This document shows, one piece after another, positions 4,087 through 41,711 of a stretch of DNA of 64,000 nucleotides (the first letter of the stretch is position 1; each line of letters begins with the position of its first letter). Below the pieces are notes generated by a model. The model was not told where the DNA came from and did no database searches. It saw only the letters and a list, made by a program, of their open reading frames with translations. A program made the translations under genes and the position numbers. Source of the stretch: Tubulanus polymorphus (lineage: Eukaryota; Animalia; Nemertea); contig NC_134036.1 of NCBI RefSeq assembly GCF_964204645.1, forward strand, positions 3,224,001 to 3,288,000. The letters are read 5' to 3'.

Positions 4087-7000
4087 TCACCTCTGCACGT
4101 GCAGTAGAATCTCGATCCAACACGGACACGACATTATAAACTGTCGCGAGTACGTCGAGCCCCAACCCTTTGCGAAACTGACGCGCACCGCGTAGCCGTC
4201 GTACGGGCCGTCGAGCGAACGCGGGTCGCGCGCGCATTCCAACAACAGCGCCATCTCGTAGTCGAACACCTTCACCGCGTGGCCGGCGGCGACTTTGTGA
4301 ACGGTGAACGTCCGAGCGCTAGGCGGCGCCGTCGGTTCCATCGTCGGCGAATTAACGAACACGGCGTGCGCCGACCGATTATAAACCCACACGCCATCTG
4401 TCTCTTTACTCAGTACTAACCCGTGTCCGATTTTCTCGCGAGTTCGTTTGATATTTTCGAGCGTCGCCGGACTGTTGACGACGCCGACGTCGGCGACCGA
4501 GCATCGACCGGTGGCGCCACCACCACAGGAGCCGCCCGACGACTCCGAGTCCTGTAAAACGGCCAGGCACATACCGTCGCCGCGCGGCAACTGTTGAAAT
4601 ATGTTGACGCTCTGTTCGGTAACCGTGTACAGACGACCGACGCGCTGTCGATTCTCCCAGTAAGCCACATTACACCAGAACCGTCGATAAGTTCCGTCCT
4701 GAGATTGACTTTCACCTGAAAAATACATACAGCACAAATATTAATTAATCACTTTTTTTCGTACAAATATCATATTTCCAATGATGCATACATTATAGCA
4801 GTTTATTTTCAATAGTAATAGTGATAGTGCAATAGTAATTTCTCTTGCGCCCTTTTTACTGTGATACTATGTTCAACGTTGTTTTCTATTAAATCAGTAT
4901 TATAACCCCGTCCTATAACTCTAGCCATTTATCAGTCATCTCTACCCGGGGAAAAGTTTGCTAGGTGCTCAGGAGTCATCTATCAGGCCAGGTACCTGTT
5001 TACTCCTGGGTGGAGAGAGGCAATGAGGATAAGCGCTTTGCCCAGGGACGAGTACGGGTAACGTACAGGGTTCGAACCCACGGCTTCCTGGCCACTCGCC
5101 CACACTGCTTGCTCAGGCAAAATCAACGTTGGTAAATTGAAATATATATTGTGAAGAGCTTCGAGATTGTTCGAATGTAATGCACTTTTTACTAATAACT
5201 TATTATCATCATCAACATACAAAACTTTTCTCGAAGAAGAAGAGATGGAACAATGACAGAAACACGAAGACAACATCGAAAAGCATTTAGATAAAAATCA
5301 ACAAGAGGAAGTTAAAATGCATTCGGATGCATTGAGAACTTGGCGACATGGCCATGATCAATCCAGCCAAAAAACGCTCTTTTGCAAAGACTTTGAAAGC
5401 ACCACACCATGCTTAAAGACTGTATCGAAATGAAAATCCAGCTGAACCCATCATCTTTCGCTAAGATTTTCTAAAAGAAAGAACATAGAAAATTCTACAA
5501 TGCCAAAAGCGATGCTGATTCTTTAGAGCGGAGGAATGAATACACGTCGCGAGGCTCTTTTGATTAACGAGTTATTTGTTTCAACTGTATGTTGTGGATT
5601 AAGGACTGGGATCGAGGTCGACGCCTCATTTTTGTAGCTGCTTAAGAGAGTTGATCGTCATCTATACTGCCTCCTTACGAGACGTGTCAATGATGGCGGT
5701 TAATCTTAGTTAATCTAACAGCATCAGCGTGATAAGAGTGATGATATATATATATCTACATATTGTAGAATGTGGGAGATAGAATCGAGTATCAATGAAA
5801 AGAAAAATCGTATTCAAGAAAAGATAATAGCGAGAGATACCTAAGTCAGGGGTGGATCCAGGGGGACTTGAGAGACTTGCATAAGTCTATAAAACTTTTT
5901 TGAGTGCCCATATCAACAAAAGATAATTGGTCCATTTCAGTGAGGTAGAGGCCCTGGTATTGCCTATTTGCACATCTAAGTTAGTATTGGCCCCTCTGTG
6001 TGTGGAAGTTCATTTAATTGGACATCAAAGTATTCTTTGGCATTTTCGAGGAATCAGGGATTCGTAGAGACCTTGAGTATCCTTACAGCTCGAGTTCATA
6101 TGACAGGAATACTTTACCAGTGGCATTCTCACGAAATATCCTCATCGTCAAATGTATCGCTTTAAGAGAGGATGGGAACCACATGACCGAGAGGAGAGCA
6201 AAACACGAAACAACCGGTTTCATTTTTAAATTTCCCTCTTATAGTCTATTAACATATGTAGAAACCGAGTCAAGTTTGTTATTTTTCATAAAACAAACTA
6301 ACACTGATACTTTTTCACAACTCGCAGCGCTCAGCAGATGCGATCGTTTAAATCGGCCATTATTATGTGGCTTTTCTACATTAGAATTCTACTGTTTAGA
6401 TAAAAATTTACTATTCGCATAAACAGGGGACGATCTGGAAAAATTGGAAGGCGCCGAGTTCCAGAAAAAAAGAAAGGGCATTGCTACGATATAGCAGCCA
6501 TGGCCTCTGTGGTGTTAGATACTTTTGAAGAAATAAACGCGAAAAGATGCAATTTCAAAGACGATGAGTGCCAAATTAACAGTCAGGTTTTCACCCAATC
6601 CTGTCTTGACGAATAGGACAACCTCGATGGGACAACAAGGCTGTCGAGACCGACCCCCAAAATCTGCCTCTGATAAAAGCGAACTTTTTTTTGCACGAGA
6701 CGAGTCTAATCTATCGACTAATGAGTATAGAGGGTTAACAGGAGACAGTGTTCGGTTCTGCTCGGCGATGTCGTCGCCGCCACCGACGGTTCGGGGGATA
6801 ATTGGAGTCGCTGTGTATAATTGAGTTGTTTGTCTAATCGCGGAATAGTTTTTGAACGCCGGTTTATTCACGGCTCGGCTCCAGTCCGCTCGGAGCTGGT
6901 ATTATGCTGATCAGCAAGTGTGGTGCCTCTAAGTCTGTTCTTACAATAGAGCAGAGCTATACCACCACTGCCACCGCTCACCACCAAGGCTGAACGCGTA

Positions 7001-19117: not shown

Positions 19118-21120
19118 GCACAGACTGCAACTGCCAGCATCCGTGGACGTGGTTGCTGCTGCTGCTGCTGCTGCCGCTGTATTGATGGATAGGTGATAAT
19201 TTTCTTCATCCGTGGTATCTTTACTACTCGGAGGATGATCACGTCGTATTTCGGAGCAGGAGGAGTTGGAGTTGGAAGCGGTGACCACAGCAGCGAGACT
19301 GGAGTTCGTAGTAGTCGTTGGTGTCGCGGTTCGACCGCCTGTGCCGACTGGTGATGGTATTATTACTACGGATGATGAAGCTGAAGAGGACGATGACGAT
19401 TCGACGATGACTCTGCTCCGGCCAGGGCTGCTGCAGGCTGCTCTCCTCAGTATGTCAAACGCGGCCGTCGTAACTTTTGAAAAATACACCAGCAATGTCG
19501 CCGATTATCGAAGCGCATCACAAATCGCTATTTCAATGACGACGATGCTACTAAAGCTTACGAAAATGACCCTGAATATAAATATGACCCTTAATTATAC
19601 GAAAATGACACTGAATTACCGCGCTATATATGAATATATCAATGTTGTTATTTACCGTTGGCTGCTTCTACAATCGCAAAAATATACCTCCTTTTCTCTC
19701 AAGTTGCAAATTCAACAACTATTCAGTGTAGAAGATGAATACCGGCGTAAATCCTTTTTTCTTCTAGAGATGCCGCACAGATTTAGTAGAGTAGTAGTAA
19801 TAGAAACCGCACAAGATAATTCCTGGGTTTATGAACCCGCAAATAAATCCGCTATTTAACTACTTTGAAACCGGGTGAGCACGGTGGCTCTTTAAATAAA
19901 TAAAATGAAGAGAGGATTGAGAGAGAGATGCGGCTCCGCTGTGGCTAGCCTCCTATGATACACCACACACTAGAACTAGAACTACATCCACACACGTCCT
20001 TTCTCCGTTAATATTACCAGCTTTCTCGTCGGTGAAAATAAACGCTCCGGACAGCGACTGATATTCGTGCAAATCCTAGATCGACATCGGCACCGAATTG
20101 ACACGGCCGAAATTCGAGTTGTTAATCCGCGCGGATTCTGAAATATCTATCATTCAGTAGTTTTGACGAGCTGTAGTTCGCTATGCGTGTTGTGAGTGTG
20201 TGTGTAGTACTCGAATGTAAACTGCTCTGTGGCCTGTGCCATCATTCACACACTGCGCAGGGAGAGCACGTTCTCAGACAATTCGGCACCGCAATGGACT
20301 ATTCCGCTATAATTAATAAAGGGGCACCGAACGCGCAGTTGAGAGTTTAAAATGCTCTAAAATTTTCAAATTTCAATATCGTTGTAATCCCGATGAATTT
20401 GGCGGATGAACGAAAGCCAGTTTAAAACGATCGCTAGCTGATAATATCAAATATGTACGATCAATATTTGTTTTGAGCTTGACCGGAAGGGTCAGTCCGT
20501 AGATCGATTATGATATTGATTTTTTAGACTTCCATTTTTGTTCCCAATTTCACGTCAACTCAGCGAAATCATTTCCGCTAGCAAAGTTTTATTCTCATTG
20601 TGGTTATACACTTTCATTGGGATGAGAAAGACTTGACCTTGTCCTCAGTCAGATCCCCAATTCACGAAAATACAAGAAAACATTTATTCTAAAACTTAAC
20701 ACTCGAAACTTTATTTCATCTCTTCGCAAAAACAAATTGTTAATTAATTAAAGTACTTATTACAACATGTAAACAACAAGATTGAGTTTGACATTCACAT
20801 GCGCCATCTGATGACATTCTAGAAGAACTAATTGAGCTGTATAAAACTTGAAACTCTGCGATCATACACTGCATTGTTTAGAGTTAGCATTCATATGATG
20901 TACAAATCAACCAAAGTTTATCTTTACATAATATAGTTTATACATACATTCAAATTAGTTACTGTTTCCAATTCACTAGTGTACTAGTACCAGAAAAAAG
21001 TACAGCATTCACTGGATATTATGTATGGTACATTAACAATATATTTGTTTTTGCATCGCCCGATGGAAATTTACTATCATTTAAAACATGTATCTAAATC
21101 ATTTCATACTATTAAGAGGT

Positions 21121-22103
21121 TCATTTTGACGAAATGAAATTTTTCTTCACATAGTCCACTCCTTTGTTGGTGTAATGTTTGATTGTTTTGGGCGATTCTT
21201 CGATAGCTTTAAACGTCGTTTCAACTCCTAGAAATATAGATCGATGAATTAAGCAGGTGATTTCAGAGAAATCAAGATATCAAAAATTCGTATTATATTT
21301 ACCACAGTTCCAATATATGGCCACTTTCTGCGACGAGTCATTAACCGAAGGAATCTGAAAGACAAAAATAAGAAAGTTTTAGTTCTATTCTAAATGAAAC
21401 GACTGGACCTAGTTCCACAATTGTGAGTTAAGATTTGACTCAGAGGTAACTCATCAAAACTGAACTAATTCTAACTCAGAGTTAACTCTATAACTCCTGA
21501 CTGTCAAACTGGATCCTGGACTATATCCACTTGTCTAATCCTACAATAACATTATCAACTAAGAATATAATGATCCTTCTTGAGTACCAGACACCGGATT
21601 GTCAATGACATCCTATAATATAGGATGCCGTGGACTTAAACAAACAATTTATATACCTTCATGAAATATTCGTTTGCTGTAGGAAGGACGGTCGTACGAA
21701 CTTTGGTCAAAGCGCGATACCCGTTGTGACTGGAATCCCAGATACCTTCTTTCACCGTCACATACACGGCCCCGCCAACGATGCCAAATTTGGCAGTCCA
21801 CCTGTGAATGTAGCAAGAAGGGGAAATAAATGTTAAGCAAAGTTAAATTGCCAGTTTTTATCGAGAAAGCAGCGATGTTTTAGAGACGTCTCGAGAAATC
21901 CAAATAATGTTCTACTCCGTGTCAAAATGAAAAACTGCAGAAATTGGTTAAAAAAAAGTGCAGATCAATTACATTAAATATCACTGTCTCAGGATCAGGA
22001 GGGCCTTGTTTCAGACAGAGAATGTCATTAGAAATTTTATTACATCATTGCATATTCGATAGGTGTGAATCAAATGTACTCACTTCACAAGCACGCCCAA
22101 CAT
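21121..22103 (-). CDS. MICOS13: MICOS complex subunit MIC13 (QIL1), ~107 aa; exons 22103-22084, 21801-21657, 21354-21303, 21227-21121
   Basis: Spliced product MLGVLVKWTAKFGIVGGAVYVTVKEGIWDSS...KVAIYWNCGVETTFKAIEESPKTIKHYTNKGVDYVKKNFISSK. It has the QIL1-family GxxxG/GGAVY transmembrane segment and the WNxG motif, and the splice phases are consistent. Confidence 0.88.
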
Positions 22104-23149
22104 TCCTGGTCGATGAGAATTTAGCGAATGAGACCTGCAAATGAAGAAGGTAGCAAGCAAATAAAATAGAGATTGAATTTACCGAATTGAATTGTAATTT
22201 GTACCTCTAATTAATACCAACCCATAGGCCTAAAATGATCAAAATAAGAGACACCTGCTTCGTTAAAATAGTTTAAGTAAATGGAACCTCAAAATGTGTA
22301 CCATTAATTATCATTGATAGCTGATAATCAAACGTGATTTAGAGTTAATTTCATTGACACTCACCTTCACAATAAATTTTGATTTACTTCGCTTGCGTTG
22401 ACTGATCGTAGACGGTCAGGCTCGAGTCCCAAATTTGCCGAGTATGGCCATTCTTAAAAATCCGCAGACCTGCCCTGAGAGGCGAATGGTCTAACTGAGC
22501 AGTATAAATGTCAAACTTGCCTTAATTCAGATGAAACGGCGTGGCAAACTCGGCGCGCTCCTGAGAGAATGAAAAAAATAATACAGCGTTGCCCAGTGAA
22601 TTTTTATTTTCTTTGTAACTAGCACTGTTCATATATGTGAAATAATAAAATATTGTAGAAAAGAATTGTATTTATTCATTATTGGCTATTCGCACGGAAT
22701 ACTCCGAAGGATAGTCGTACGGATTACTCCGAAAACTATTACGAACCATGGCTGAATTAGCCACAATTAGGGAAACCAACAATGAGCGAATAAACAAAAA
22801 TAAACAAACGAACGAACAAAACATGTACTTCTATTTTGAAAAAATATCAGCACATTTTCATTCCATAACACAGAAATAAAGAAAGTTTGAGAGCATTTCA
22901 ATTCATGCCTCGTCCAGGAACAATTATAGTCACGGATATAAATCAATATTATTTATTCGAAGAAAACTCATGGTAGAAACAACGATGAAATAAACAAAGC
23001 AGGACCAAGCCCAAGGGTTTCATTTGAATCAACCTTTGATTGTTGCTAAAACCTCATGAAACGATTGGAAGGTTTTAACGTGAATCATATTTATTTTTAT
23101 AATTTACATCAATTATAGAAAATGCCAGATTACGTGCTTGAGGAATTAT

Positions 23150-24690
23150 TAATGTAAGTTCCTCAAACACGTTGACTGTACTATTTCAAAATCAGTCCAA
23201 CCACAGTTGACGTATAAACTATAAACTAGGACAATTTGCTAATATCCTCATTTATCAAGAAACTCAACTCTATTTCCCCTTAATAAAATCACACGAACAA
23301 CTGAAAACTACAAGGTGAAAAAGTTGCTATAAACTAAACAATTGAAGAGTTATGAAGAGTTCATGATGAAGAACATGTGTGTCGTTTTATTCTTATGACA
23401 ACTATTTTACATTGCTAAATGACAGGTATCATACTCAAGGAATTTATCATATAAGTTTCTCATTAACAAACACGTGAACTGTATAGCAAAAAGAGTTCAA
23501 CATAACATAATTAAAAGTATTAAACGAGAGATAAAAGTACGAATTCACTCTAAAAAAGCTTAAGATAAACAAACCCATCTTTAATTTCATGTTGATTGAC
23601 AATTATTTTTATTAGAAAAATATAAATTTGCAAACTTTGCCTCGTCTTAACTTAAAGATTTTCAAACATAATAAATTGCTTGAAATAAGTATTCAGACGT
23701 TTTTTCTTCCAGCTTTGAAATGAAAAATATCAAAATAATTATACTATCAATAACAAATCAACAATGATATCGATAATTTATGTTTATAACGTTTTTACGT
23801 TCGTGTAAATTGTATCAATCAGATTTTATTCCCCAGATTACCCATTAAACAATTAATACAAAATGTCAGGCGAGTGCTCAAGGCAAGTTCCTAACATTTG
23901 GGTTCTATTTCAAAAACAGTCCAACCATGGGACAATTTACTAATTGTTCATATATTCCTCATTTATCAAGGATCATTTATCCTCTTTTTTCGACAGGACC
24001 TTAATTAAATCAGTATTTTATGAACCACTGAAAACCACAACATTGAAAAAGTTGCTATAAACTAAACTAAACTAAACAATCGAAGTGGATGAACATGTGT
24101 GTAGTTTTATTCTTATGACAACAATTATACCTTGTTAAATGACAGGTATTATACTCAAGGATTCATCATGTAAGATCCTAATGAATATATAACATAAGTT
24201 CCTAGTGAACAAACACGTGAACTGTATTGCGAAAACAGTTCAACATAAAAGCATTAAACTAGAGATAAAACCTATGAATTCACTCTAAAAAGCTTAAGAT
24301 TAATAAATCAATCTTTAATTTCATTTGAATTAACATTATTTTTATTAGAAAACTAGAATTTTGCAAACTTTTTCTCGTCTCATCTTAAGGATTTTCAAAC
24401 ATAATAAATTCCCTTGAAATAAATATTCAAGGTAAAACCTACGAATTCACCCAGGACAGCCTAAGATAAACAAATCAATCAATAATTTCATTTTCGTTGA
24501 CATTTTTATTAGAAAACTATATTTCTACCTACTTACATTGTCTCAATTGAGATTTTAAGACGTTATTACTTCACTGACATATTTCTTCCAGCTTTAGAAA
24601 ACATTAAATGATTATACTTTGAATAAATAATCAACATCAGTAATATCAGTAATTTAAGTTCATGGCTGTTTTAACATTCGTGTAAGTCAG
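23150..24690. repeat. Degenerate tandem duplication of an AT-rich ~700-750-bp segment, with an extra internal partial copy
   Basis: ctatttcaaaa.cagtccaacca occurs at ~23181 and ~23905. gaattcactctaaaaa.gcttaagat occurs at ~23541 and ~24276, and in degenerate form at ~24443. Confidence 0.8.
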
Positions 24691-25609
24691 TCGTCCATAA
24701 AAATCTTGATACATTTAAATGATTTCCAATCGCAGAAATTTGTTTCCAAGCAAATGTTAAAAAGCGAGTATGTACAGAAATGTAGTTGCGGCCCCACACT
24801 TTTTGGCCAAGTGATGATTTTTTAAACATTGAAATCCAAAAACAGAATATTACGCATGTCTTCTTTATTATGTCTAAAAGTTAAGTCTAAAAATTTATGT
24901 CGACATATTTTCGCACATACAACTTTTTAAAATCCTGGCTACTTAAACGTTTAGGCAAAGCACATTATTTTCATCCAAGGAAATATAAAATGAACCACTA
25001 TTTCTTAGATTGATAGACCATTCATCCAATCATGGCAGGCTGATACGGAGAACAGGTTTCAAATCATTCAAAGTTAAGCTTAACTAAGTATGAAAATTAT
25101 CTGAACTTAAGTTCACAATATCATGTTGATTCTACCGGTATATCTCAGTTTACGCGCAACTCAACCATTCTATGAGTCGCACCTAGGCAGTGGACGTGAT
25201 CATTAAAACAGCGTCACAAACCTAACTTAACTAATCTAACCTAACTTAACAAATCTATCTGGGAGCAAAGGTCAAAATCACACAGCGTAGATTTTTTGAG
25301 ACTCTAAGAAGGAACTTTCAGTAAAGATTACAAAACAGAATGACTCCTGTTTATAAATTCATTAGTCTTTTCGAAAACAGTTCGCCCAATTAATTTAAAG
25401 TATAAGGATGCGATTTTATTGCAATATTCAAACGTAGATAGTTCCTTCTCAGGCCACAGAACCCTAATTAACCTAACTTCAATTTCATTGAATAATTCAT
25501 TACAAGTAGACTGTAATCTGGTAAATTTTGTGAACCTACATTTCTGACTAGACCAGTTTGTACAAGTGTAAAAATAAATCAGTACTTTACATTACTTTGA
25601 AGTCAATTA

Positions 25610-25985
25610 TTGTCTCTGTTGCTCCTCGAGTGTTCATAAGATGCACAAGCTGCTCCTCAAGTGTTTATAAGATGCACTAGCCGCTCCTCAAGTGTTTCTA
25701 AGATGCACTAGCTGCTCCTGAGTCAGTGTTTATAAGATGCACTAGCTGCTCCTGAGTCAGTGTTTATAAGATGCACTGACAGCTCCTCAGTCAGTGCTTA
25801 TAAGATGCACTAGCTGCTCCTCAGTCAGTGTTTATAAGATGCACTAGCTACTCCTCAGTCAGTGTTTATAAGATACACTATTGTCTCTGCTCCTCCTGGA
25901 TCAGTGTTTATAAGACGCGCTATTGTCCATGCTGCTCCTCGAGTGTTGATGGGATCCGCTACTGCTGCTCCTGAATCGGTGTTGG
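25610..25985. repeat. 31-35-bp minisatellite, ~10 copies
   Basis: Unit gctgctcct(c/g)agtcagtgtttataagatgcacta. Confidence 0.9.
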
Positions 25986-26892
25986 TAGAGATCCACCATC
26001 ATTCGTTGAAGAAATCCATCGTTGGGCGATAACTCGCTGCTGCTGGCTCTACAACTTCTCATCTGGACGTCTGCAGTTTTCATCGGCATCAGTAGTCATC
26101 TACTTTTGGTTGTCATTTACCAATCGAAGACCATTATTTCCAGGATAGAGTTCAGCTGAAATTGCCATGTTTTTTTGCAGCGGAAAGATTGATCGAAATT
26201 GATTGCGGCTTAAGACCATAACTAATAGTAGTTCAGCAGCATTGATACATCACTGTTTAAGACTAGTGACAACAGAATATGAGGCTGGATATAAGATCAG
26301 CCGTGCAGACCGTCACATGTAAATTTAACAATATAGAGGTCTGAAATGTCTATACTAGAAGAATTTCAGATCATTTAAATTCATCTTTATTTTAGATATC
26401 TAAACAATCAGTTAATTATTAAGCTATATAGCTATAATTTTAGCTATAGTTTGTTTTGGTAATTTGACTGCCTATATCCTAGTAACACTTAAGTTAAATC
26501 TGTTGATTAATAACTGACCTATCTACACTTCATTACTCAGCCAAGAATATTCATATGAGACCTAACGAGTACTATTTAGAGCAATGATTGTCATAGATTT
26601 CAACTCACTGATAACCATATACCGGCTACAGAGCTTCAATCTTCAATCAGTAAATAGTAAAATTTAGAATATTGAGAACTTCACCAGCGCCTCTGTTCTC
26701 TTCAGTGCTACGCATCCTGCCATTGATGCTAAACCAGAAATGAAAAATCAACTTAGCTTTTTATCAAGACTGCCAGGTTCCGTTTCGAAAGGTCTCTCGG
26801 TGTTTTGTTGACGAGTTTAATGCAAGCTGGAGTTTTCTGTGGTGACTTCTGGTCGGTAGGTTCTAGATGGCTGATGTATCTCATGCTGGGCC

Positions 26893-27345
26893 TTTTCAGA
26901 TTCATGTTAAGCTGCAATGAGTAAAAGAATGACATTCTGTAGTCACAGAATTGATTAATTGTAATTGACATGTGTATCAACTTAACTTTCTTAAGATTGC
27001 TGAGCATCCTTTTTGCATCGTCCTATGGTGTCTCCGTCATCTTCTTAATCGTGGTGGGCGTGTTCAGATTAAGTCTACCTAAAATGAGTAAAAGAAAGAC
27101 ATTCTGTAGTCAAACAATTCTTTGATTAATTGTGATTTACATGTTAATCAACTTAACTTTCTCAAGATTGCCGAGCATCCTTTTTTCATCGTCCTATGGT
27201 GTCTCCGTCATCTTCTTAATCATGATGGGCGTGTTCAGATTAAGTGTACCTAAAATGAGTAAAAGAAAGACATTCTGTAGTTACAATTCTTCGATTAATT
27301 GTAATTTACATGTTTATCAACTTAACTTTCTCAAGAATGCCGAGT
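26893..27345. repeat. ~171-bp tandem repeat, ~2.6 copies
   Basis: ttcagattaagt..acctaaaatgagtaaaagaaagacattctgtagt occurs at ~26895 (degenerate), 27063 and 27234. Confidence 0.85.
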
Positions 27346-27450
27346 TCAGTATCATCTTGTTGTAGCATCGCCATCTTCTGTCCTCTTGGGGCGTCGTTGT
27401 CTTCTGTGGGAGTCCTGAAATGAAAAAAAGAACAGAGATGAAAACCTGGT

Positions 27451-28225
27451 ACGGAACAAAACTAATGGCCGAAAGCGTCGGCTCTCCTTCGCCGTTCATG
27501 AGTGGAGGATACCAGAAAAAGAGTCGGCCAGGAATTCGCTGCCCTCTACACGCCCTCACACAGAATGCGAAAACCTGAATGACAACTCCCCACGTACACC
27601 ATCTAACCACAGGGTGTACTGGGCTACGTTAGTAACTGACAAACCTGTGCGATTGTTCAAGGCAAAAATAGCGCAGTACAACCAGATTGACCGGATTGAG
27701 ATTCAGGATCTCAACTAGCACCAAAAGCGTGACAAGAGACTTCATCCACTGACCGGGTGGTCACAAGGACACAATGAATCTAGCACTCACAAGCCGACAA
27801 GAGACTTCATCCACTGACCGGGTTGTCACAAGGACACAATGAAATCTAGCACTCAAACTAGAAATCAAAGGGCGAGACAGTAGAATCATCCCTCAGCCGA
27901 CTCAATGAATACCAGAAATCAAAGGCGTGACAGTAGAATCATCCCTCATCCGAGCGGTCACAAGGACCAATGGATACTAGTGGCGTGACAGTCCAGTATA
28001 ACCGCTCCATTTTTACCGCGAACAATCCGACAGATGTGCCCGTCATTGACGTCGCCAAGCACACTCTGCAGTTAGATAACGAACGTGAAGCAGTTGTCGT
28101 CCTGGTTTTCGTGTTCCGTATGAAGGCGTGTAGAGGGCAGCATTTCCTGACCGACTCTTTTTCTGACATCCCCTGCACATGACCGGCGAAGGAGCCGACG
28201 CTTTCGGACATTAGTTTTGTTCCAT
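27451..28225 (-). ncRNA. Candidate long hairpin RNA: imperfect inverted repeat with arms 27451-27674 and 28004-28225 and a ~330-nt repeat-built loop
   Basis: The arms align as reverse complements over ~220 bp. A hand count of transition mismatches gives ~23 that form G:U in the minus-strand RNA versus ~8 in the plus-strand RNA. Confidence 0.5.
27731..27985. repeat. Nested direct repeats forming the hairpin loop
   Basis: gacaagagacttcatccactgaccggg..gtcacaaggacacaatgaa.tctagcactca x2; agaaatcaaagg.cg.gacagtagaatcatccctca x2; a third gtcacaaggac at ~27957. Confidence 0.85.
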
Positions 28226-28407
28226 AGAACGTTGAAAATCGACGGATAAATCGGCCCTGAAAAATAAAACGGATTAGATCCTGAAAAATAGAACGGGTTG
28301 ATAAACACCGAACAGTACACGACAGTACACGGACGGACAGTAACACATAAAACATAAAGACATCGTTCTTTATATGGAAAGAACCAGCTAGTAGAGCGCA
28401 GCGTAAT

Positions 28408-28466
28408 CGCGAGGATGATAGCCAGGATGATCGCCGGGATGATCGCCAGGATGATCGCCGGGATGA
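28408..28466. repeat. 12-bp tandem repeat, ~5 copies
   Basis: Unit gcc(a/g)ggatgatc. Confidence 0.85.
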
Positions 28467-29564
28467 ACGCCATATTCGAAATCAGGTCTACACAGTGTGA
28501 AGATCAAGAGATGAATGACCGGCTTAGTGATTCTACTCACTGTCGACTGGTGGCGTATTTCAATCCTGACCAATAGGCAGCCGCGCTGTTGTCTCTAGTA
28601 GTTGAAAGCGTTTACATTGAAGTGTGAAGACCGTTCCGCTGTTGCACACATGGGGCGATCGTGACGTCACCTCTGTATACATCCAGCATATAGACCGGGC
28701 ACACGGGTACCATTGAATATTGATCTATAGAAATAACTCTGAACATTCGAATTGTCGAAGTGACCGCATGATAAAACACTGAGGCGACGTCACCTCTATA
28801 CACCCGGCATATGGAGTATTGAACTTGATCGAAAAAACTAATGATTAAAGCAAACAATTTGAATACCCTGATCGTTTTCAGACTCTCTTGGTTGCATCGA
28901 TGTCTGTTTATCATTTACGACGGTTGTACGCGTAATAAAATACAAAAAAAAAACATCAACCAACTTCATTGAACGTAAATTTCTAGTCAAATGATGAACG
29001 CATTTGGTAGATTTCTGAAGATGCCGGCTTACTTTTTGATAACGATCGCAGAGATGGAATATTTACCGTATTCGGGAATCTGTCGATGCTTTTAAACGCC
29101 AACTTCAAAACATTTTTAGGAAAGCTTTTACCGTTGAATAATGTCTCTTACAGTTTGTTTTTATGTTCTTGTATTGCAATGGTATTTCAAATAATTTTGT
29201 GGTTTCGTGTAAAGTGCGAAGATTACTATAGCCGTAAACAAACAAGTTACTGTCGATTGATTGATTCAGTTATTTCAAGTAAAATATCAGATAATCATCT
29301 AATTCATTATCGACTGATTCGTTTTTTTGTGAACGTAAAGCCATCTTTTGCTCGTGTCCTAAAAAACTATTCAAGATGTAGAATTTGTAAGTAACGTCCC
29401 ATTGCACCAGGCATTACCTATGATCTATTTGATAAGCCTATAAGACCCCCAGCAATCGCGTCTCGGGTGTTCCGAATTTCTGACGTAATGCGATATTTTT
29501 GTTATATTCTTTTAAAAAGTGTTCTGAGGGTGCGCTTTTCCGAGGTAGAATTCTGAGAGAATTA

Positions 29565-29770
29565 TCACCAAGAGGCGAATTTAGCTTCTGCAGATAGCGA
29601 CCTGTCCTGAGAGGCGCATTTCATCTTCTGCAGATAGCGACCTGTCCTGAGAGGCGCATTTCATCTTCTGCAGATAGCGACCTGTCCTGAGAGGCGCATT
29701 TCATCTTCTGCATATAACGAACCACCTGCCCCGAGAAGCGAATTTGGCTTCTATGGACCTGCCCCGAGTC
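29565..29770. repeat. 40-bp minisatellite, ~4-5 copies
   Basis: Unit cctgtcctgagaggcgcatttcatcttctgcagatagcga. Confidence 0.9.
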
Positions 29771-30891
29771 ATTTAGCTTTTGAATTGGCTTTGTTTATTC
29801 ATGGAAGTGATGAGACTCATCACACTTCCCAAAGGATTCATCAAAGGATTTTTCCTGGGACCGAATGGAAAAATCTAAACACCAATTTCTTCATATGTAT
29901 CTGGAACACCATACGTCAACTCTTGTTGTTCAAGTCACCTTAACTGTAACTGCCAATTCATTTCCCTCTTTTAAGAAACTTAGAAATTTCCTTGGATAAT
30001 AAAAGATAATTATGCAGTTTAATAAGTTGAAAAAATCCAAGAATTCTAAAACAATGCCGTTACTTTTCGATATAAATGAGACTATTTATTCTTCAATAAC
30101 ACATTATTAAACTGAGACGACTAAATCAAAACTTTGCACACAAGTGTGATTGAATATTAATCTTTTTAATACTAATTCGATTTAATACTTAATGAAACGT
30201 CACAATTGATTATCAAATTGTAATTAACGAAACAAAACAAAAATATCTGTTAAGTCACTGGTCCTTATTAAACTTTTCTAAAGAAAACTATAGAGTGAAT
30301 GACAAAAAAATTAACTACAAGATAAAAACAACAGTTTTTCTTAATATACAAACAATAAGTACATATATATCCGCATCGATTAAATTTGATAGTGAAACTA
30401 CAAAAAACATGTCTTCAAATACTGTACATAAATCAACTTAAAAATGCCTGTACATTAATATTAAAGCCTATATTTTAATCACTTCCTTGCGCCGTAATTT
30501 CTATTCAGCCTTACTGACGCAAAGTAGGTTTAAACTTGGCATTTGGAAGTGCATCCATGGAGGCTTTGACTACAGTAGAACTCGCTGAATCCAGACTTTT
30601 AATCAGGGTTTTCGTTTAATTCGGCCGAAATATTTAATCCGTTAAACCTAGAAAATGTAAAATACTATTCACAATTCGGATTTGACTTAATTCCGAGAAA
30701 TCTGGGCAGTCTCAAGTCATCCGAATCAACTGAGTTCTACTGTATGTACATGTACTATCAAAGGGCTGATGCGATACCCTGGAATCCCCGTTGACAGCGG
30801 GCTGGGGTTGCTGGGAAAACCCAGGCTACATTTCTAATAAATGCTATCTTCAGCATTGATTACTAAGAATCGTATCAATTGCACAACGTAA

Positions 30892-33800
30892 TTAATCTTT
30901 ATCCGCTTCGACAGATTCTGTCGAAAGATCGTCGACATCAGGACCCGCGGTGGTCTGATCGGATATTTCGCCTCGAATCGCAGAAGTGGTGTCGCGATTG
31001 TTGTCATGTCCAAACTCAGCTCGTATCTCGCCGTCTTTCTCATCGCGATCAGATAAAATTTTTGGATCTTCGTTTTGTTGATTCTCCGTGTCACCGATTA
31101 AACCCGCGACCATCGGAATATCGCTATCATTAAGGCAAGGATCGACGGATTCCAAGAAACTATCGAACAGATTTTTGCCGTCGAAATGCTCGATTTCGCA
31201 CGAGTAGTCGGCGCCGCTGCTTTCGTCGTCTAACTGTCCGGAATGTTCAGTTTCGACGTCGGTTTGTATCGTGAAACTGTTATCGTGCTGAATTTCTTCT
31301 TTGGAAATCGCACCAGTATTCGCAGCGTCGGAAAGCAGAACGTTCTTTACCCTAAAATCATTCCTCGGTACGGGCATCGCTTTCTCTTCTAGATCCGGCG
31401 GCGATATTTCGCCACACGGGAATTTGTCGGAGTCCTGCGGACGCGGCGATGAGCAGCATCGCGGCGACTGCTGGCATCGTTCATCGTCCGCTGTAACCGC
31501 CTCGACGGACACCTCCGCAGCCGCGAGTACGAACGTACTTTCTCTGTCCGAGTTCGGGGTCGAATTCATGGAACTATCGAGTTTCAACACGAATGGACTA
31601 TTATCGTCGCAATCCATGTCAGCTGTCAACATCGCGTCAACCGATTCGCCGACAGCTTCTATCGCGTCTCCTATATCGACCTCGTCCTCTGTATTCATGT
31701 CATCATCATCCTCATCATTGCCGCATATTCCTTCTTGCTCTTCCTCCAGTTCATCTAGTTTCTCCAACAATTCCGATTTCATTCGCTCCAATTCGTCCAT
31801 CTTCTCTTCGATTTCTTCCGCCAGATCTTGCTGTTGTATTTTCGACTGAAGGCTCTCTGCGATTTCGTCCATTTTTTCGCAGCTATCTTCGTCCATCTTT
31901 TCATCATCGTCACCATCATTTCTATCTTCGTTCCGGATCACAACATCATTCGCATCCTCTCCTGGTTTTCTTTCTTCAGACTCATTTTCATCTAATTTCA
32001 ACGCGAAAACAGGTTTTTCTAACACAACAGGACCAGGAGCCACTACTTTGACCTCAGTAGCCTCGCTAACCTCTGGCACTTCACTTTTCTCGCGTTCTCT
32101 TAAGTTAGTTGAAGCGGTTTCAGTAACATCGCTGTTCAACTCTTCACCGCTACTCTGTTCAACTCGAACATCGCCGCAATCATCATCACCAGTAGATTTC
32201 AACTCCGCCGATTCACTGTTCTTCACAAGAGGAGTAAATTCCTCACGTAGACTACGTCTAACCTCCGAGGACGGTTTCGATTTTTCCTCAGATATAACCC
32301 CGACATTGTTTTTAGCAGCAGCAGCAGCAGCATCCAATCCAGGTGTGGATTTCGAAGCTCGTGGTTTTGAATCACGTTTTGACAATGGTTTTGATTTCGC
32401 GATAGTTTCATGGTCGTAATCAAGCATTTCTTCGAAGCTCAGTCGTTTCCTCGACGAGCTAATTAGTGCTGGTCGTGGTTTCTGCTTCTTGGGCGGAATC
32501 TCCGTCTCCGGGAGCCTCGTCTTTCCTTCAGCCGCCCGTTTCGTTTCCAATCCAATCCCTTTAATTTCACTATTTGCTTTTTCTCCGACCATCGAATCTT
32601 TTCCCTGGGAACTTTTGGATGTGACAGGTTCTGCTTTGCGTTTCATTTCGTCGACGATCTCTTCTCCTTTTGACAGAACTTCGGGAGAACTTTTCGATTT
32701 ATCAATCTTCGATTTTGCAACATCTTCCTGATCTTTTTCATGATGCGATTTCTTGTGCTGATTGCGCTTCGTCGTTTCAATTTTCGACAGAACTATTTTG
32801 CTATGAGATATCCTCTTCGATTTGTATGATTCGGTCGGACATCCGTGGCTGCCGGCGGATGCTTGCGAGCTTCGCCCGCAAGACAAGCACGCTTTCGTAG
32901 CGACGGTCGTTTCGTGATCGGCATGAAAATGTTTGTCCAGTTCGACACGAGATTCCACGCTCCGCTGACAAGTCGGACAATGATCGGTTGACTCGGCGAC
33001 GTCGTCAGAAGCTTCTGACGTAATTTTCTCGCGTTCTTCGCTCGGCAGGATTTTTGGTTTGGCGGCCGGTATTTTCGCAACTCTTTCGACGATCTCCGAA
33101 TCGCAACGCTTCAAAGCGACCACCGGTTTACGCATTAGTTTTTCGTCTGGAACGACAGTGGCGCCAGCGGCCGGTTCAATGCTGTTACTGGCGGAGACGG
33201 GTTTCTCAGCGACGGCGTGTTTGGAAACGTGTCGCACCAATTCGTACGTGTGTTGGAAGTTCATTCCGCAGACGGAACACTTGTTGCGCTCGGGCGGCAG
33301 TCGTTTCTGCAATGCTTGCATCTTCTGTATGATACGCTTCTGCAGTTCATCGCGAGTCGTAGTACCCGTTGTCGAAGTCTTCGCGCGACTATCGCCCCCT
33401 AGTGGTGGTGATGCAATCTTCGATGATGTTGCGCTTCCTGAAGACTCTAGCGATGATGATGACGATGAATTTTGGCTTAATGAAACTTTCGAAGGCGAAT
33501 CATCTTTACCGATTGCAGAAGAGGTTGACTTCAACTGTGTATTTTCACCAACATTGGATGCAGGAGATGTAACTGACGAGGAGTGATCGGTCTTGTCGCG
33601 ATTCTCTAGTCCGGACTGAGAAGAATGGACTGATTTCTCATGTTCGGATAGCAGCGACCGCGACTCAAATACGCCCCAATCACACGATGCGCATTTTCGG
33701 TAGTCATGGCATTGAACGAAATGCTGTTTCAATTCCGCAAGCGACGGGAACGCTCGCGCGCAATGTCGACATCGCTTCGAGGACGGATGCACGGTCGCCA

Positions 33801-36800
33801 GGTGCCGTCGCAGGTACGTTTTATCGGTGAACCCGCGGTCGCATCGTACGCACGGATACGGTTTCCGGTGCATACGCATGTGCATCTTGTAAAGCTTCTT
33901 CAAGTGGAACGAACACGCGCACGCCTCGCACCAGTAGTCGCGTTGGGTTGTGTGCTGCGCGACGTGCGTCAACAGGAGAACGCGCGACGCGAACCTCCGT
34001 TCGCAGATTGAACACGCGAACGCGCGATTCGACAGATGGTGTCGGCGTTTGTGCGAATTCAGCCGCGACCACGACGCGAATGACGGACGACTCGCCGTGC
34101 ACAGGTGGCACGCGAAGTGTCTGCGCGCGATTCCGTGTCGCCGGTGTTTATGCAGAATCAACGAATCGCGGTTGACGAATCGACGGCTACAGAGCGTACA
34201 CTTGAACGACGCTGCTTCAAAGCTGCTCGTATGCGATCTCTTATGTGCCTGCGCTAAACGATGCAGCGTGAATCGCTTCTCGCAAACTTCGCATCGATAT
34301 TGCTTTCCGATCGATGGTTTTAAGGTAGCTTTAGCAACGGCTGATGTTTGGCGAGTCTTGCTGTTGCTGCTGCTACTGCTAGTCTGAGATGATGTTGATT
34401 TCTTACGAGCTTCAGGGGGTTCACAAGGAGGCGACATTTTTATTTTAGCCGATACCTGATTCTGATGAGGCTCACTAGGGGGTGTTGTCTTTGAGGCAGG
34501 CGGAGTCTGCACAGTCTCACTAGTAGTTGTTGTTTTTGAGGCAGGCTGAGTCTGCAGGGTCTCACTAGAGGGTGTTGTCTTTCTGGCAGGCCGAGTCTGC
34601 GCGGTCTCACTAGTAGTTGTTGTTTTTGAGGCAGGCCGAGTCTGCGCGGTCTCACTAGTAGTTGTTGTTTTTGTGGCAGGCTGAGTCTGCAGGGTCTCAC
34701 TAGGGGGTGTTGTCTTCCTGGCAGGCCGAGTCTGCGCGGTCTCACTAGAAGTTGTTGTTTTTGAGGCAGGCCGAGTCTGCGCGGTCTCACTAGTAGTTGT
34801 TGTTTTTGTGGCAGGCCGAGTCTGCGCGGTCTCACCAGTAGTTGTTGTTTTTGTGGCAGGCTGAGTCTGCAGGGTCTCACTAGGGGGTGTTAGTTTTGTG
34901 GTAGGCAGAGTCTGCAGGGTCTCACTAGGGGGTGTTGATTTCGTGGCAGGCTGAGTCTGCAGGGTCTCGCTGGGCAGCGTTGTTTTTGTCTGATGAGGCT
35001 CACTAGGAGATATTGTCTGCATGGTCTCATTAGGTGGCGTGGTTAGCGTCCGTTGAGGCTCACTCGATTTCTCTGCTGCTGCGACTTCAGAATCTAGTTT
35101 CCCATCATTAACTTCATCATCATCTTCATTCTCATCTTCCATCGTAATAATTTTCATCGGTACACCTGGATGCTCGTGACGGAAGTGCGGAATGGCGGCG
35201 TTAACGTGGTCGAAAATCGTCGAGCAAATAGCGCACTTGCACGGCTGCTGATTGGACGAATGATGCACCAGGTGACGCCGCAACGACGCCATTTTCATCG
35301 ATGCTTTGCACAGTGGGCAGATTACGTGATCTCGTTTGGCGCCGACCCGGGACGCAGTATCGTCCTCGGTTTCCGTCTGCAGCTGAGCTTGCACCATGCG
35401 TAGCCTCGAATCGTGCGCGATGCCGCATCTGGCGAGGCAGCTACCGACGTGTTTGTCGTACGCGTGTTTCTTACGATACGACGCCCCGCAGCCCTTGCAC
35501 GTCCGGCCGTGCGCGGCGAAGATGTGCTGCTCGCATTCGCACTCGCTTAAACCAGCCCACGAACAAGCATCGCACAGGTAGACCTTTGGGTTGGCGGTTA
35601 CGACGGCGCCGCAATCGTGAATCTTCAACTCGTCTACGTCGACGAAACGCTGCTTGCACAAATTACACGCGTAAATCGGCACGCGTCGCTCGATCGGGTG
35701 CGCGTCAGCGGCGTGCTCGCGCGCGGCTACCGCGTCCGGGAAATACCGCGGGCACGTGTGACAGCGTATGCGCGTCGTGTACACCGCTCCGCTGCGGTGC
35801 ACGTCGAGCCCGTGTCGGAGCGCGTGGCTCTCGACGGCGTAAACGCGTCGACTCTTCGGCGGGCAGATCGTGCACTCGTGTTCGTAAACGAGCTGCCAGT
35901 GATTGTCGGCGACGTGTTTGTCGAGCGTCGACAACGCGCGGAACGCGTAACCGCACGCGTAGCACACGTACGGACACTCGTTCGCGTGCGCCGACGCCGC
36001 GTGGCGCAGACATTTCGATTCGTTGGCGAACATCTCGCGACAAACGCAACAACTTTTACGACGCGTTCGTTTCTGACGGTCGTTCTTATCGGAAATCTCG
36101 ACGGCGGTCGTAGTAGTTTTCATTTGGTCGATGGCGCGTGATTTTCTGGTCGATGCCCTCTTTTTCCTATTCGATATTTTTGTGTCTGAAAATTCAACGA
36201 AATATCATCAAGAAAACACACGCTTTGCGATAACTCTGCGCACTTGTAGAAATCGAACGTACCGGACTTTGTCTGAGTTTTCTGCATAATTGATGACGTA
36301 TCTTCTTCCATCGCTTCATTACAGTTGAGATCGACAACAGGATTTACATCAGGAGTATCGCTTGTAGCAGAATGATGACGCTGTGCGAAAACAAATCAAC
36401 AAAATTCAAATAAATATCATCCGAGAGCGTTATTACAGGTATCATTCTGTAACCTGGATTCACTAAGAGCGAACGATCGACAATCATTTAAGAAAAATGC
36501 GTTGATAAAATGTCTAATATCTGGTGTTTATAGATCATTTTCAATTAAAATTTTTCCGGTGATTTTCTGAAATCACGCTAGAAATTGAAAGAATGCATTG
36601 ACTGAATGTTTATTTTGCCTATAATAAAGTCTCTACCTAAACTCGAGTTTACGAATTTTATCCGAAGTCAAACATATTTAGTTCACAGCAACTCTAAATC
36701 AGTACATTGTATTCAACAAAGCCAATTATGAATAATAGTTTACACATGGTTCCAAATAAAATGGAAAAATATTTCATCCAAATTAAGTGAAAATCCGGAT

Positions 36801-39653: not shown

Positions 39654-40421
39654 GATGATGGAGTTCCTTGCTTAGCGAATCCTATTCAGAAATCAACAAA
39701 CAACTAAAAAAAGAAGGGAAGTTTGATAATCAAGAAAGAGAGGGGTTGTTTTGCTTAAAGACCCGACGAGGTCTATTCCAGGATCGAGCTAGCAAATATC
39801 GAATTGATCCGATTCGATCGATCAATCAACGAACGCGGTCTGAATTGATTTTTTTCATCATCTTTTAATTCAAACATCTTCTTTCTTCATTTTAAACGCA
39901 TTTATCGTAAAACTGGAAACAATCCGAGGCAATCAGGAGTTAACCGACTTACCTAACTTTCAACTAGATTCAAAGACGAAGGCTGACACGCTTCCGTCGC
40001 TGCAGCATCGTCGTCAGTAAGGCGGAGGCTGACCCAGGGAGGAACAGCTTGAGGCTATATTCATCAATAAAATGTTGCTTTAGTTGCGTTCATTTCAGCG
40101 CTGTCGATACTAGGTTCGAATCCCGAAAACCTGAAAACGAATTCCAATTCACTTTATTGATCACCGTATTTGGAAATTCCGACCGACGGTGCGCGAATTA
40201 CCGCTAGACGGTGCACCGTTCGATAATAAACTACACATCGAAACTTGTTTCGTACACATTTTGTTTCTAGGTCATAACTGTGTTCGGGATGTGTATTTTG
40301 AATAGTAGATAACGATATCTTAGATTCTTAATAATCTGTTGTATTTCATTCAATGTTCAAAAACTACACGAAACCGACATTTCATGTCTACAGTTCATTT
40401 ACGAATAAGAAAGGAGGTATC

Positions 40422-41711
40422 ATGGATTTCGTGAAGAATTCCAGGTTCGTTTTGGTCGTTTCTCTCGGGTTTCTGGTGATCGTCGGTTACTACATGGTAC
40501 GCGGCAGCGGACCTTACGATCCCGTTAAGGTCAGTTTGGACGCTTCGATGCCCGTAGGCGTGGCCAACGCCACCAGAACGATGTACGTCATCATGTTCGA
40601 CGCGGGAAGCACTGGCAGTCGAATTCACGCTTACGAATTCGTGAAGGACAACGTGAACAACAAGATCGATTTGAAGGACGAATTATTCGAACACGTCAAG
40701 CCTGGGCTGTCGTCCTATGCCGACGATGCCAAGGCGGGTGCCGAAAGCTTACGAACGCTGGTGGAAAAGGCGAAGAAATACATCCCGCAAGACCAGTGGG
40801 CATCGACCCCGCAAGCGCTGAAAGCCACGGCCGGTTTGAGATTGTTAGAGAAACACAAAGCCGACAACATCTTGAACGAAGTACGCGATTTCATGCGCCG
40901 TCAACCGTTTCAATCGGTGGAAAACGTCGTCGAAATCATGGGCGGTACTGACGAAGGAGTTTACAGTTGGTTCACGATAAATTTTTTGAAAGGTCACCTG
41001 GCGAATATCGCGACGACCGCCGGCGTCATCGACCTGGGCGGCGGATCGGTGCAGGTAACCTTCATACCTCGCGAGGGATCGGACACGAAGAAAACCGCCC
41101 CGAAATCGCATCTGCATCGGGTACCTGTCATGAAACGCGACGTGGACCTTTATACGCACAGCTACCTAGGACTGGGTCTGATGTCGGCTCGTATGCAAAT
41201 ATTCGGGCGCGATCCCGACGCGAAAAGCCCGACCCAGTCGACGTCTAACGAACTGCATAGTCCGTGTATCGCTCCGGCCATCGAAACCGAATGGGAATTC
41301 CAAGGAAACAAATTCACAGTTCGCGGAACAGACGATTCTAACAGTTTCGAGTTGTGTTATAAAGCCGCCCGGGCGGTCGTCGTGAAGCACAAAGTATTCT
41401 CGCCGGTGGAGATTAGAAAAGATCGGCCTTTCAATTTGATCTCATATTTTTTCGACAAGGCCGCCGATGCCGGCTTGATCGACGAAGAGAAAGGCGGTCA
41501 TTTGACGCTGGAAGATTTCTCGAAAGCGGCCGCGAAACTTTGCGCCAATCACGACGCGAAACGCCCGTTTTTGTGCATGGATCTCTCGTACATCACCGCG
41601 CTACTGCGCGACGGATGGCGTTTCGAAGAGCGAACTCAGTTTTCGCTCGAAAAGAAAATCAAAGGCATCGAAACGGCTTGGACATTGGGAGCAGCGTATC
41701 AATTACTATGA
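40422..41711 (+). CDS. ENTPD5: Ectonucleoside triphosphate diphosphohydrolase 5/6-like (GDA1/CD39 family), single-exon CDS
   Basis: Apyrase conserved regions are present: DAGSTGSR, KATAGLR, GTDEGVYSW, DLGGGSVQ and WTLGAA. There is an N-terminal signal-anchor (FVLVVSLGFLVIVGYY). The likely start is MDFVK at 40422 (an in-frame ATG also exists at 40353). ENTPD5 versus ENTPD6 orthology is not resolved. Confidence 0.88.
   Translation: MDFVKNSRFVLVVSLGFLVIVGYYMVRGSGPYDPVKVSLDASMPVGVANATRTMYVIMFDAGSTGSRIHAYEFVKDNVNNKIDLKDELFEHVKPGLSSYADDAKAGAESLRTLVEKAKKYIPQDQWASTPQALKATAGLRLLEKHKADNILNEVRDFMRRQPFQSVENVVEIMGGTDEGVYSWFTINFLKGHLANIATTAGVIDLGGGSVQVTFIPREGSDTKKTAPKSHLHRVPVMKRDVDLYTHSYLGLGLMSARMQIFGRDPDAKSPTQSTSNELHSPCIAPAIETEWEFQGNKFTVRGTDDSNSFELCYKAARAVVVKHKVFSPVEIRKDRPFNLISYFFDKAADAGLIDEEKGGHLTLEDFSKAAAKLCANHDAKRPFLCMDLSYITALLRDGWRFEERTQFSLEKKIKGIETAWTLGAAYQLL

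Follow-up and report, generated by a model that had tools for sequence, protein, structure and literature searches.

The hairpin RNA (hpRNA) loci of Drosophila, described in Okamura 2008 and Wen 2015, are among the described systems closest to the locus analysed here. Such loci, among them hp-CG4068 and Nmy/Tmy, are long imperfect inverted repeats predicted to fold as one RNA strand; they contain internal tandem units, evolve fast and belong to lineage-specific families, and each occupies one locus or a small cluster, with a stem sequence that is matched to its target (PMC10292708, PMC10317233). Foldback transposons and MITEs also have long inverted arms and internal tandem repeats, occur in many copies and lack coding capacity, and their arms are their termini. 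Subtelomeric and ectopically recombining repeats are enriched at chromosome ends and consist of mosaic copies whose segments have decoupled histories. Finally, hairpin transgenes have been engineered in plants so that C-to-T changes, all placed in one arm, break the DNA inverted repeat and avoid self-silencing while G:U pairs (roughly 18–26% wobble) keep the RNA hairpin (PMC9263138). Here, we describe a dispersed repeat family of the nemertean Tubulanus polymorphus that is like each of these systems in some respects and differs from each in others. One copy lies in the 64-kb stretch of DNA that was analysed as a whole (hereafter, the window). On the evidence of substitution patterns and predicted folding, we put the chances at about even that the minus-strand RNA of the module common to the roughly 105 copies is under a pairing constraint.

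The window copy is built on two arms that flank a central region (Table 1). Computed local alignment of one arm with the reverse complement of the other gives 183 matches over 232 aligned positions (78.9%) with three small indels, in keeping with the two diverged reverse-complement arms with few indels that the initial annotation had described. Among the 49 mismatches, 24 become G:U pairs when the minus strand is read as RNA (12 C/T and 12 A/G), 8 become G:U pairs on the plus strand and 17 are transversions; the polarity of 24 against 8 (binomial test on the window copy, p = 0.007) is close to an earlier hand count of roughly 23 against 8. Folding both strands as RNA, as the initial annotation had proposed, places the minus strand lower, with a minimum free energy of −428.2 kcal/mol (z = −28) compared with −336.7 kcal/mol (z = −20) for the plus strand. 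With DNA folding parameters the values are −195 for the minus and −178 for the plus strand. Because the gap between strands is large with RNA parameters and shrinks with DNA parameters, the asymmetry is mainly a property of RNA wobble pairing. The 323-nt centre, which lies between the arms and had been treated as a loop, itself has a significant fold on one strand, the minus (−107.6 kcal/mol, z = −2.85; none of 100 shuffles did as well), and not on the plus (−69.2 kcal/mol, z = +0.55). In the RNAalifold model, pairing inside the centre depends to a large extent on G:U pairs formed between the two types of tandem unit there. Read as minus-strand RNA, the whole module is predicted to form a nearly continuous, imperfect rod of roughly 790 nt.

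Table 1. Positions in the window of the hairpin module and of the repeat that surrounds it
Feature	Position	Strand	Remarks
Larger repeat unit carrying the hairpin (approximate)	23000–29200	-	Copy L002 90% identical over 25943–29206; no ORF of at least 150 aa
171-bp tandem array, 2.5 units, part of the repeat unit	26916–27344	.	Single unit in main subfamily; exon-like part has stops in all three minus-strand frames
Left flank common to all copies	27250–27442	-	Acceptor-like motif (T-run then CAG, ~27415–27432); all 39 other copies homologous from ~200 bp left of the hairpin
3′ arm of predicted minus-strand hairpin (left arm on plus strand)	27443–27677	-	Alignment to 28001–28233; RNAalifold, 40 copies
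Central region	27678–28000	-	Two 65-bp and two 53-bp tandem units; best-conserved part of the family
5′ arm of predicted minus-strand hairpin (right arm on plus strand)	28001–28233	-	Pairs with 27443–27677; ~83% identity to main subfamily (B)
Right flank common to both subfamilies	28234–28368	-	Two 24-bp direct repeats (28256–28299), each with an acceptor-like T-run and CAG on the minus strand
ATG followed by hydrophobic stretch on a 12-bp repeat (28406–28472)	28385–28473	-	Possible first exon or mere low complexity, uncertain; Pfam sub-threshold only

The genome to which the window belongs (268 Mb in 77 contigs) was searched with the 791-bp unit, and all 40 of the candidates scored are full length at 86–96% identity. 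The 291-bp centre alone returned 109 candidates, of which the 40 scored are all at least 94% identical, and a 21-mer present twice per copy gave 210 matches at up to three mismatches, compared with 0–1 for the reversed control. The 210 matches and the 109 centre candidates together indicate a family of roughly 105 members, so the single uncharacterised host locus that had been envisaged gives way to a family, with at least 40 full-length copies scored and ~105 inferred. All 39 other copies have in common with the window copy ~200 bp to the left and at least 135 bp to the right of the hairpin, and many extend for several kilobases. Six copies of the main subfamily have most of the left 10 kb in common at 90–98% identity; window positions 23083–27022 are collinear with the 10-kb flank of one subfamily-B copy (66–82% homology), and homology between subfamilies A and B ends at 28368 on the other side. 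The 10-kb flank of a subfamily-B copy contains no ORF of at least 120 aa and no further long inverted repeat, and a 116-bp tandem array is the only one there.

Since homologous flanks continue past the arms in all 40 copies, the arms are not transposon termini. The initial annotation had named as adverse to its own reading many genomic copies in which the arms are the long TIRs of a foldback transposon; the many copies are there, but the arms are not TIRs. In contrast to foldback transposons and MITEs, the Tubulanus arms are also only 79% alike and carry a one-strand wobble bias. Only short A-rich similarity (GAA/TGAAAA) borders them, and the common flanks leave a single ancestral junction, with no independent insertion sites at which a target-site duplication could be scored. 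We rejected an independent foldback element or MITE because the flanks are common to all copies. The hairpin is the conserved 0.8-kb core of a larger repeat and not the mobile unit itself.

A protein-coding gene with the hairpin in its first intron was also considered and is not supported: there is no long ORF, the reading frames are not conserved and Pfam similarities are sub-threshold only. Minus-strand ORFs that start at the ATG and hydrophobic stretch (28473) enter the arm, in a frame that differs between subfamilies, and in subfamily B the position matching 28385–28473 is taken by a different hydrophobic start, beyond which the frame is not conserved. Beyond the acceptor-like motif, the frame in which the putative second exon is open is not the same in subfamily A as in subfamily B. 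No module ORF has a Pfam match above threshold. Rfam gives no hit at gathering score in the window, an E-value scan returning mir-329 alone at 24 bits against a cut-off of 76.8, and neither exact-ORF look-ups nor a protein word search gave transcript-derived records in a database from which this genome's own records may be absent. The polypyrimidine/CAG acceptor-like motif noted earlier is indeed present ~30 nt beyond the hairpin on the minus strand, and it is retained across the family. The surrounding interval had been described as 7 kb free of genes; there is no ORF of at least 150 aa across 19859–30892, but the interval is not empty, being filled by the repeat unit.

Two more tandem arrays lie inside or beside the repeat unit: 7.6 copies of a 34-bp unit (with a 42-bp variant) at 25629–25939, and 3.8 copies of a 40/80-bp unit at 29571–29752. 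Upstream of the module on the minus strand (28650–28810) are two copies of a ~20-nt motif ending GGTGACGTC, which are CRE/ATF-like (TGACGTCA), and the subfamily-B consensus also has GGTGACGT at a comparable place; this motif may be a promoter element. A single large ORF on the same strand (30892–36123, minus) encodes 1743 aa with C2H2 zinc fingers (Pfam zf-C2H2 and zf-C2H2_4) and contains an internal 45/135-bp tandem array (34471–34968) encoding T/S/P/E/Q-rich repeats. It ends ~2.7 kb upstream of the hairpin, so that in the window copy the module could lie in its read-through or 3′ UTR territory. Elsewhere in the window we find a 452-aa ORF that lacks introns and belongs to the GDA1/CD39 nucleoside phosphatase family (40353–41711, plus strand; E = 2e-74) and an exon-sized ORF with a complete SMAD MH2 domain (4087–4737, minus strand; E = 3e-44).

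The copies are dispersed over all large chromosomes and concentrate towards their ends. Among 44 loci on the five chromosomes whose lengths are known, 31 map to the terminal 10% (8.8 expected, p = 7e-13), and the central 40% contains none of them; copy L002 sits 812 kb from the window copy. Both orientations are found at both chromosome ends, which shows that the polarity tracks the strand of the element itself rather than replication direction. There are few flank types (three main ones on the left, two on the right); they are shuffled with respect to module type, and farther out many flanks are unique. In L003 and L005, for example, the module is A-type and the right flank B-type; in L028 and L032 the module is B-type and the left flank A-type. 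Pairwise distances of left flank, module and right flank are uncorrelated (r = 0.02–0.05), compared with r = 0.95 for left against far-left flank. The repeat is thus mosaic, dispersed and non-coding, and the window copy belongs to subfamily A, the older and more diverse of its subfamilies. The mosaic copies suggest ectopic recombination among chromosome-end repeats. Ectopic exchange is common near chromosome ends and, given the decoupled histories of the segments, could lower diversity in the core without selection.

Copy number, terminal location and shuffled segments, all TE-like or subtelomeric in character, bring in an explanation with no selected RNA, which we regard as the serious rival, although on balance the less likely account: the module could be a DNA-level palindrome within such a repeat. 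An old inverted duplication would then owe its polarity to mutation that differs between strands, through transcription or some other link to the element's strand, and its apparently compensatory changes to templated quasi-palindrome correction or arm-to-arm conversion; low diversity in the core would reflect ectopic gene conversion, perhaps started by breaks at the palindrome. The family nevertheless differs from subtelomeric and ectopically recombining repeats in having a discrete, highly conserved core with strand-specific potential to fold as RNA. Across the clean columns of 16 subfamily-B copies, diversity falls from 0.137 in the far-left flank through 0.091 in the left flank and 0.038 in the near-left flank to 0.028 in the left arm, is lowest in the centre (0.011), and rises through the right arm (0.017) to ~0.03 in the right flank, making the core the least diverged part of the unit. 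Identity of the window copy to subfamily B is 66–70% in the wider left flank, 81–83% in the arms and 94–95% in the centre. From these profiles, the stem appears to behave as a conserved structure and the centre as a conserved sequence.

The same minus-strand G:U polarity, at roughly 3:1, is found in all 40 copies, and predicted folding of one subfamily-B copy gives −429 kcal/mol for the minus strand and −318 for the plus. An RNAalifold model of the 40 copies contains 284 pairs (−346 kcal/mol), in 19 of which both sides have changed in at least one copy with the pair kept. Pairs defined in this way are biased towards kept pairs and were set aside for the polarity test, which instead used 216 pairs supported in both subfamilies, taken from strand-neutral DNA alignments of the arms, with substitutions placed by parsimony on the tree. 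On subfamily-A and deep branches, 60 transitions at Watson–Crick pairs created G:U on the minus strand and 29 on the plus strand (p = 0.0013); in the young subfamily B the counts are 36 and 28, which is not significant. Both transition types contribute in the arms (C>T 62 versus G>A 40; A>G 34 versus T>C 17). Between the window copy and the B consensus, 13 G:U pairs are common to both, lineage-specific changes comprise 22 G:U against 9 A.C, and there are five compensatory double changes where 0.78 are expected with shuffled partners (0 of 2,000 shuffles reach five), counts that are to be read with the copies related by descent and arm-to-arm conversion possible.

Several of these patterns bear on the palindrome explanation. 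Positions that are not Watson–Crick paired change ~3 times faster than paired ones, mostly toward pairing, which fits selection or templated quasi-palindrome correction alike. Arm-to-arm identity is 76–82% in every copy, so conversion between arms cannot be frequent. Strand asymmetry of transitions is seen outside the arms too: in the centre and right flank, read on the minus strand, C>T far exceeds G>A and T>C exceeds A>G, and the left flank shows neither excess. The premise of the initial annotation that neutral decay gives no strand bias was therefore too strong. Transition rates in the centre, which is not a clean neutral control, predict an arm polarity of ~1.3:1, whereas 1.7:1 is observed (96 versus 57). 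Of the transition excesses, only A>G is clearly arm-specific, exceeding T>C by 2:1 in the arms with the order reversed in the centre and right flank, which speaks against the palindrome account. CpG-specific strand asymmetry was dropped as a test of selection, since it came out at 30 versus 12 in one analysis and at 22 versus 25 in another, depending on alignment and filter. A DNA palindrome also does not predict the minus-strand-only, G:U-based structure of the centre, or a gap between strands that is large for RNA and small for DNA; the lack of significant bias in recent copies speaks for it. The earlier view that the polarity reflects minus-strand RNA and not plain decay of DNA thus draws support from recurrent independent substitutions, compensatory changes and the one-strand fold of the centre, but strand-biased mutation may contribute.

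If a minus-strand rod is made, the copies might be true hpRNA loci of the Drosophila type, the rod being diced to siRNAs for silencing either their own repeat family or a gene in trans, a possibility that we judge improbable. The long predicted duplex, with ~235 bp of stem and a paired centre, would suit this role; repeated centre units would yield repeated identical duplexes, as in tandem-repeat hpRNAs; and RNAi can be triggered by G:U-rich hairpins (PMC9263138). The genome contains one Dicer_dimer locus, and, according to a survey of RNAi genes in lophotrochozoans, Nemertea have kept an siRNA-type Argonaute (PMC11114477). The same survey reports DICER2 to be absent from the phylum, unlike the hosts of Drosophila hpRNAs, and an endo-siRNA signature to be absent from a small-RNA library of the nemertean Notospermus geniculatus (PMC11114477). 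Together these reports lower the prior for a Drosophila-style Dicer-2/AGO2 hpRNA, and that route is doubtful for the module. Neither the arms nor the centre has homology outside the module within the 64-kb window or 80 kb of its flanks, and the count of the conserved 21-mer (210, two per copy) agrees with the size of the family, so that no target outside it is obvious. Whereas the stem of a Drosophila hpRNA is matched in sequence to a target, the Tubulanus stem seems to evolve as structure and not as sequence, contrary to what trans-targeting siRNAs need, and where a discrete locus or small local cluster is expected there are ~105 dispersed copies. Production of siRNAs from the module is possible and is disfavoured by the gene content of the phylum. 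We consider it quite improbable that the ~105 copies are active genes for a wobble-paired RNA rod feeding a Dicer-2-independent dsRNA pathway, built on the single Dicer and an siRNA-type Argonaute, in which the conserved repeated centre would specify functional small RNAs or serve as a protein-binding platform; the clade is at present regarded as having lost its endogenous siRNAs.

A long predicted dsRNA would also satisfy the structural requirement of ADARs, and the genome has roughly four A_deamin (ADAR/ADAT-type) loci. The rod might then be mainly an ADAR substrate, acting as an editing sponge or as self-marking dsRNA, or the A>G changes, which exceed T>C in the arms, might be editing fixed via RNA-mediated copying; this strikes us as highly improbable. 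At arm A>G events a 5′ G neighbour is not depleted (19/60 versus 30/99 A sites, p = 0.86), so the polarity is not due to fixed footprints of editing, a neighbour signature in genomic A>G saying nothing about editing of the RNA itself. In addition, C>T contributes as much as A>G, and the copies have long common flanks and show no sign of retro-copying. At C6:22412835–22415754 and C6:22408010, one family copy and the genome's best A_deamin locus (ADAR-like) lie ~5 kb apart, which is probably a coincidence given ~105 copies.

Returning to a pairing constraint on the minus-strand RNA, the most likely role of the module would be as a long-dsRNA element acting in cis within a non-coding repeat of selfish or gene-like character, and not as a single host hpRNA gene. 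The repeat would be transcribed from its own minus strand, and the rod might occupy an intron-like segment bounded by a variable piece upstream and by the acceptor-like motif. In the lineages that seed new copies, pairing of the stem would be kept as structure and the centre would be kept as sequence, with G:U wobble preserving the RNA duplex while the DNA palindrome drops to ~79% identity. The behaviour of engineered G:U hairpins, in which C-to-T arm differences likewise break the DNA inverted repeat and G:U keeps the RNA hairpin, provides a plausible rationale for a natural wobble-rich hairpin (PMC9263138). In contrast to those plant constructs, the Tubulanus hairpin is natural, has its wobble in both arms at ~10–13% of pairs, and is putative in function. 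The rod may be bound or processed by dsRNA-binding proteins, whether the single Dicer with the nemertean siRNA-type Argonaute or ADARs, and individual recent copies appear to decay free of pairing constraint. This reading is weakened by the unbiased recent copies, by the possibility of strand-biased mutation and by the decoupled histories of flank and module.

The meaning of the family depends on which account holds. If the module is merely a palindrome in a recombining subtelomeric repeat, it is an ordinary repeat, and it cautions that finding wobble biased to one strand in a single copy is no proof of a host small-RNA gene. If the rod is a selected RNA, it would be a natural counterpart of the engineered G:U hairpin design, and a phylum from which Dicer-2 and endo-siRNAs are reported absent would have a large family of long-dsRNA genes. 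The use of endogenous long dsRNA by such animals would then become directly testable.
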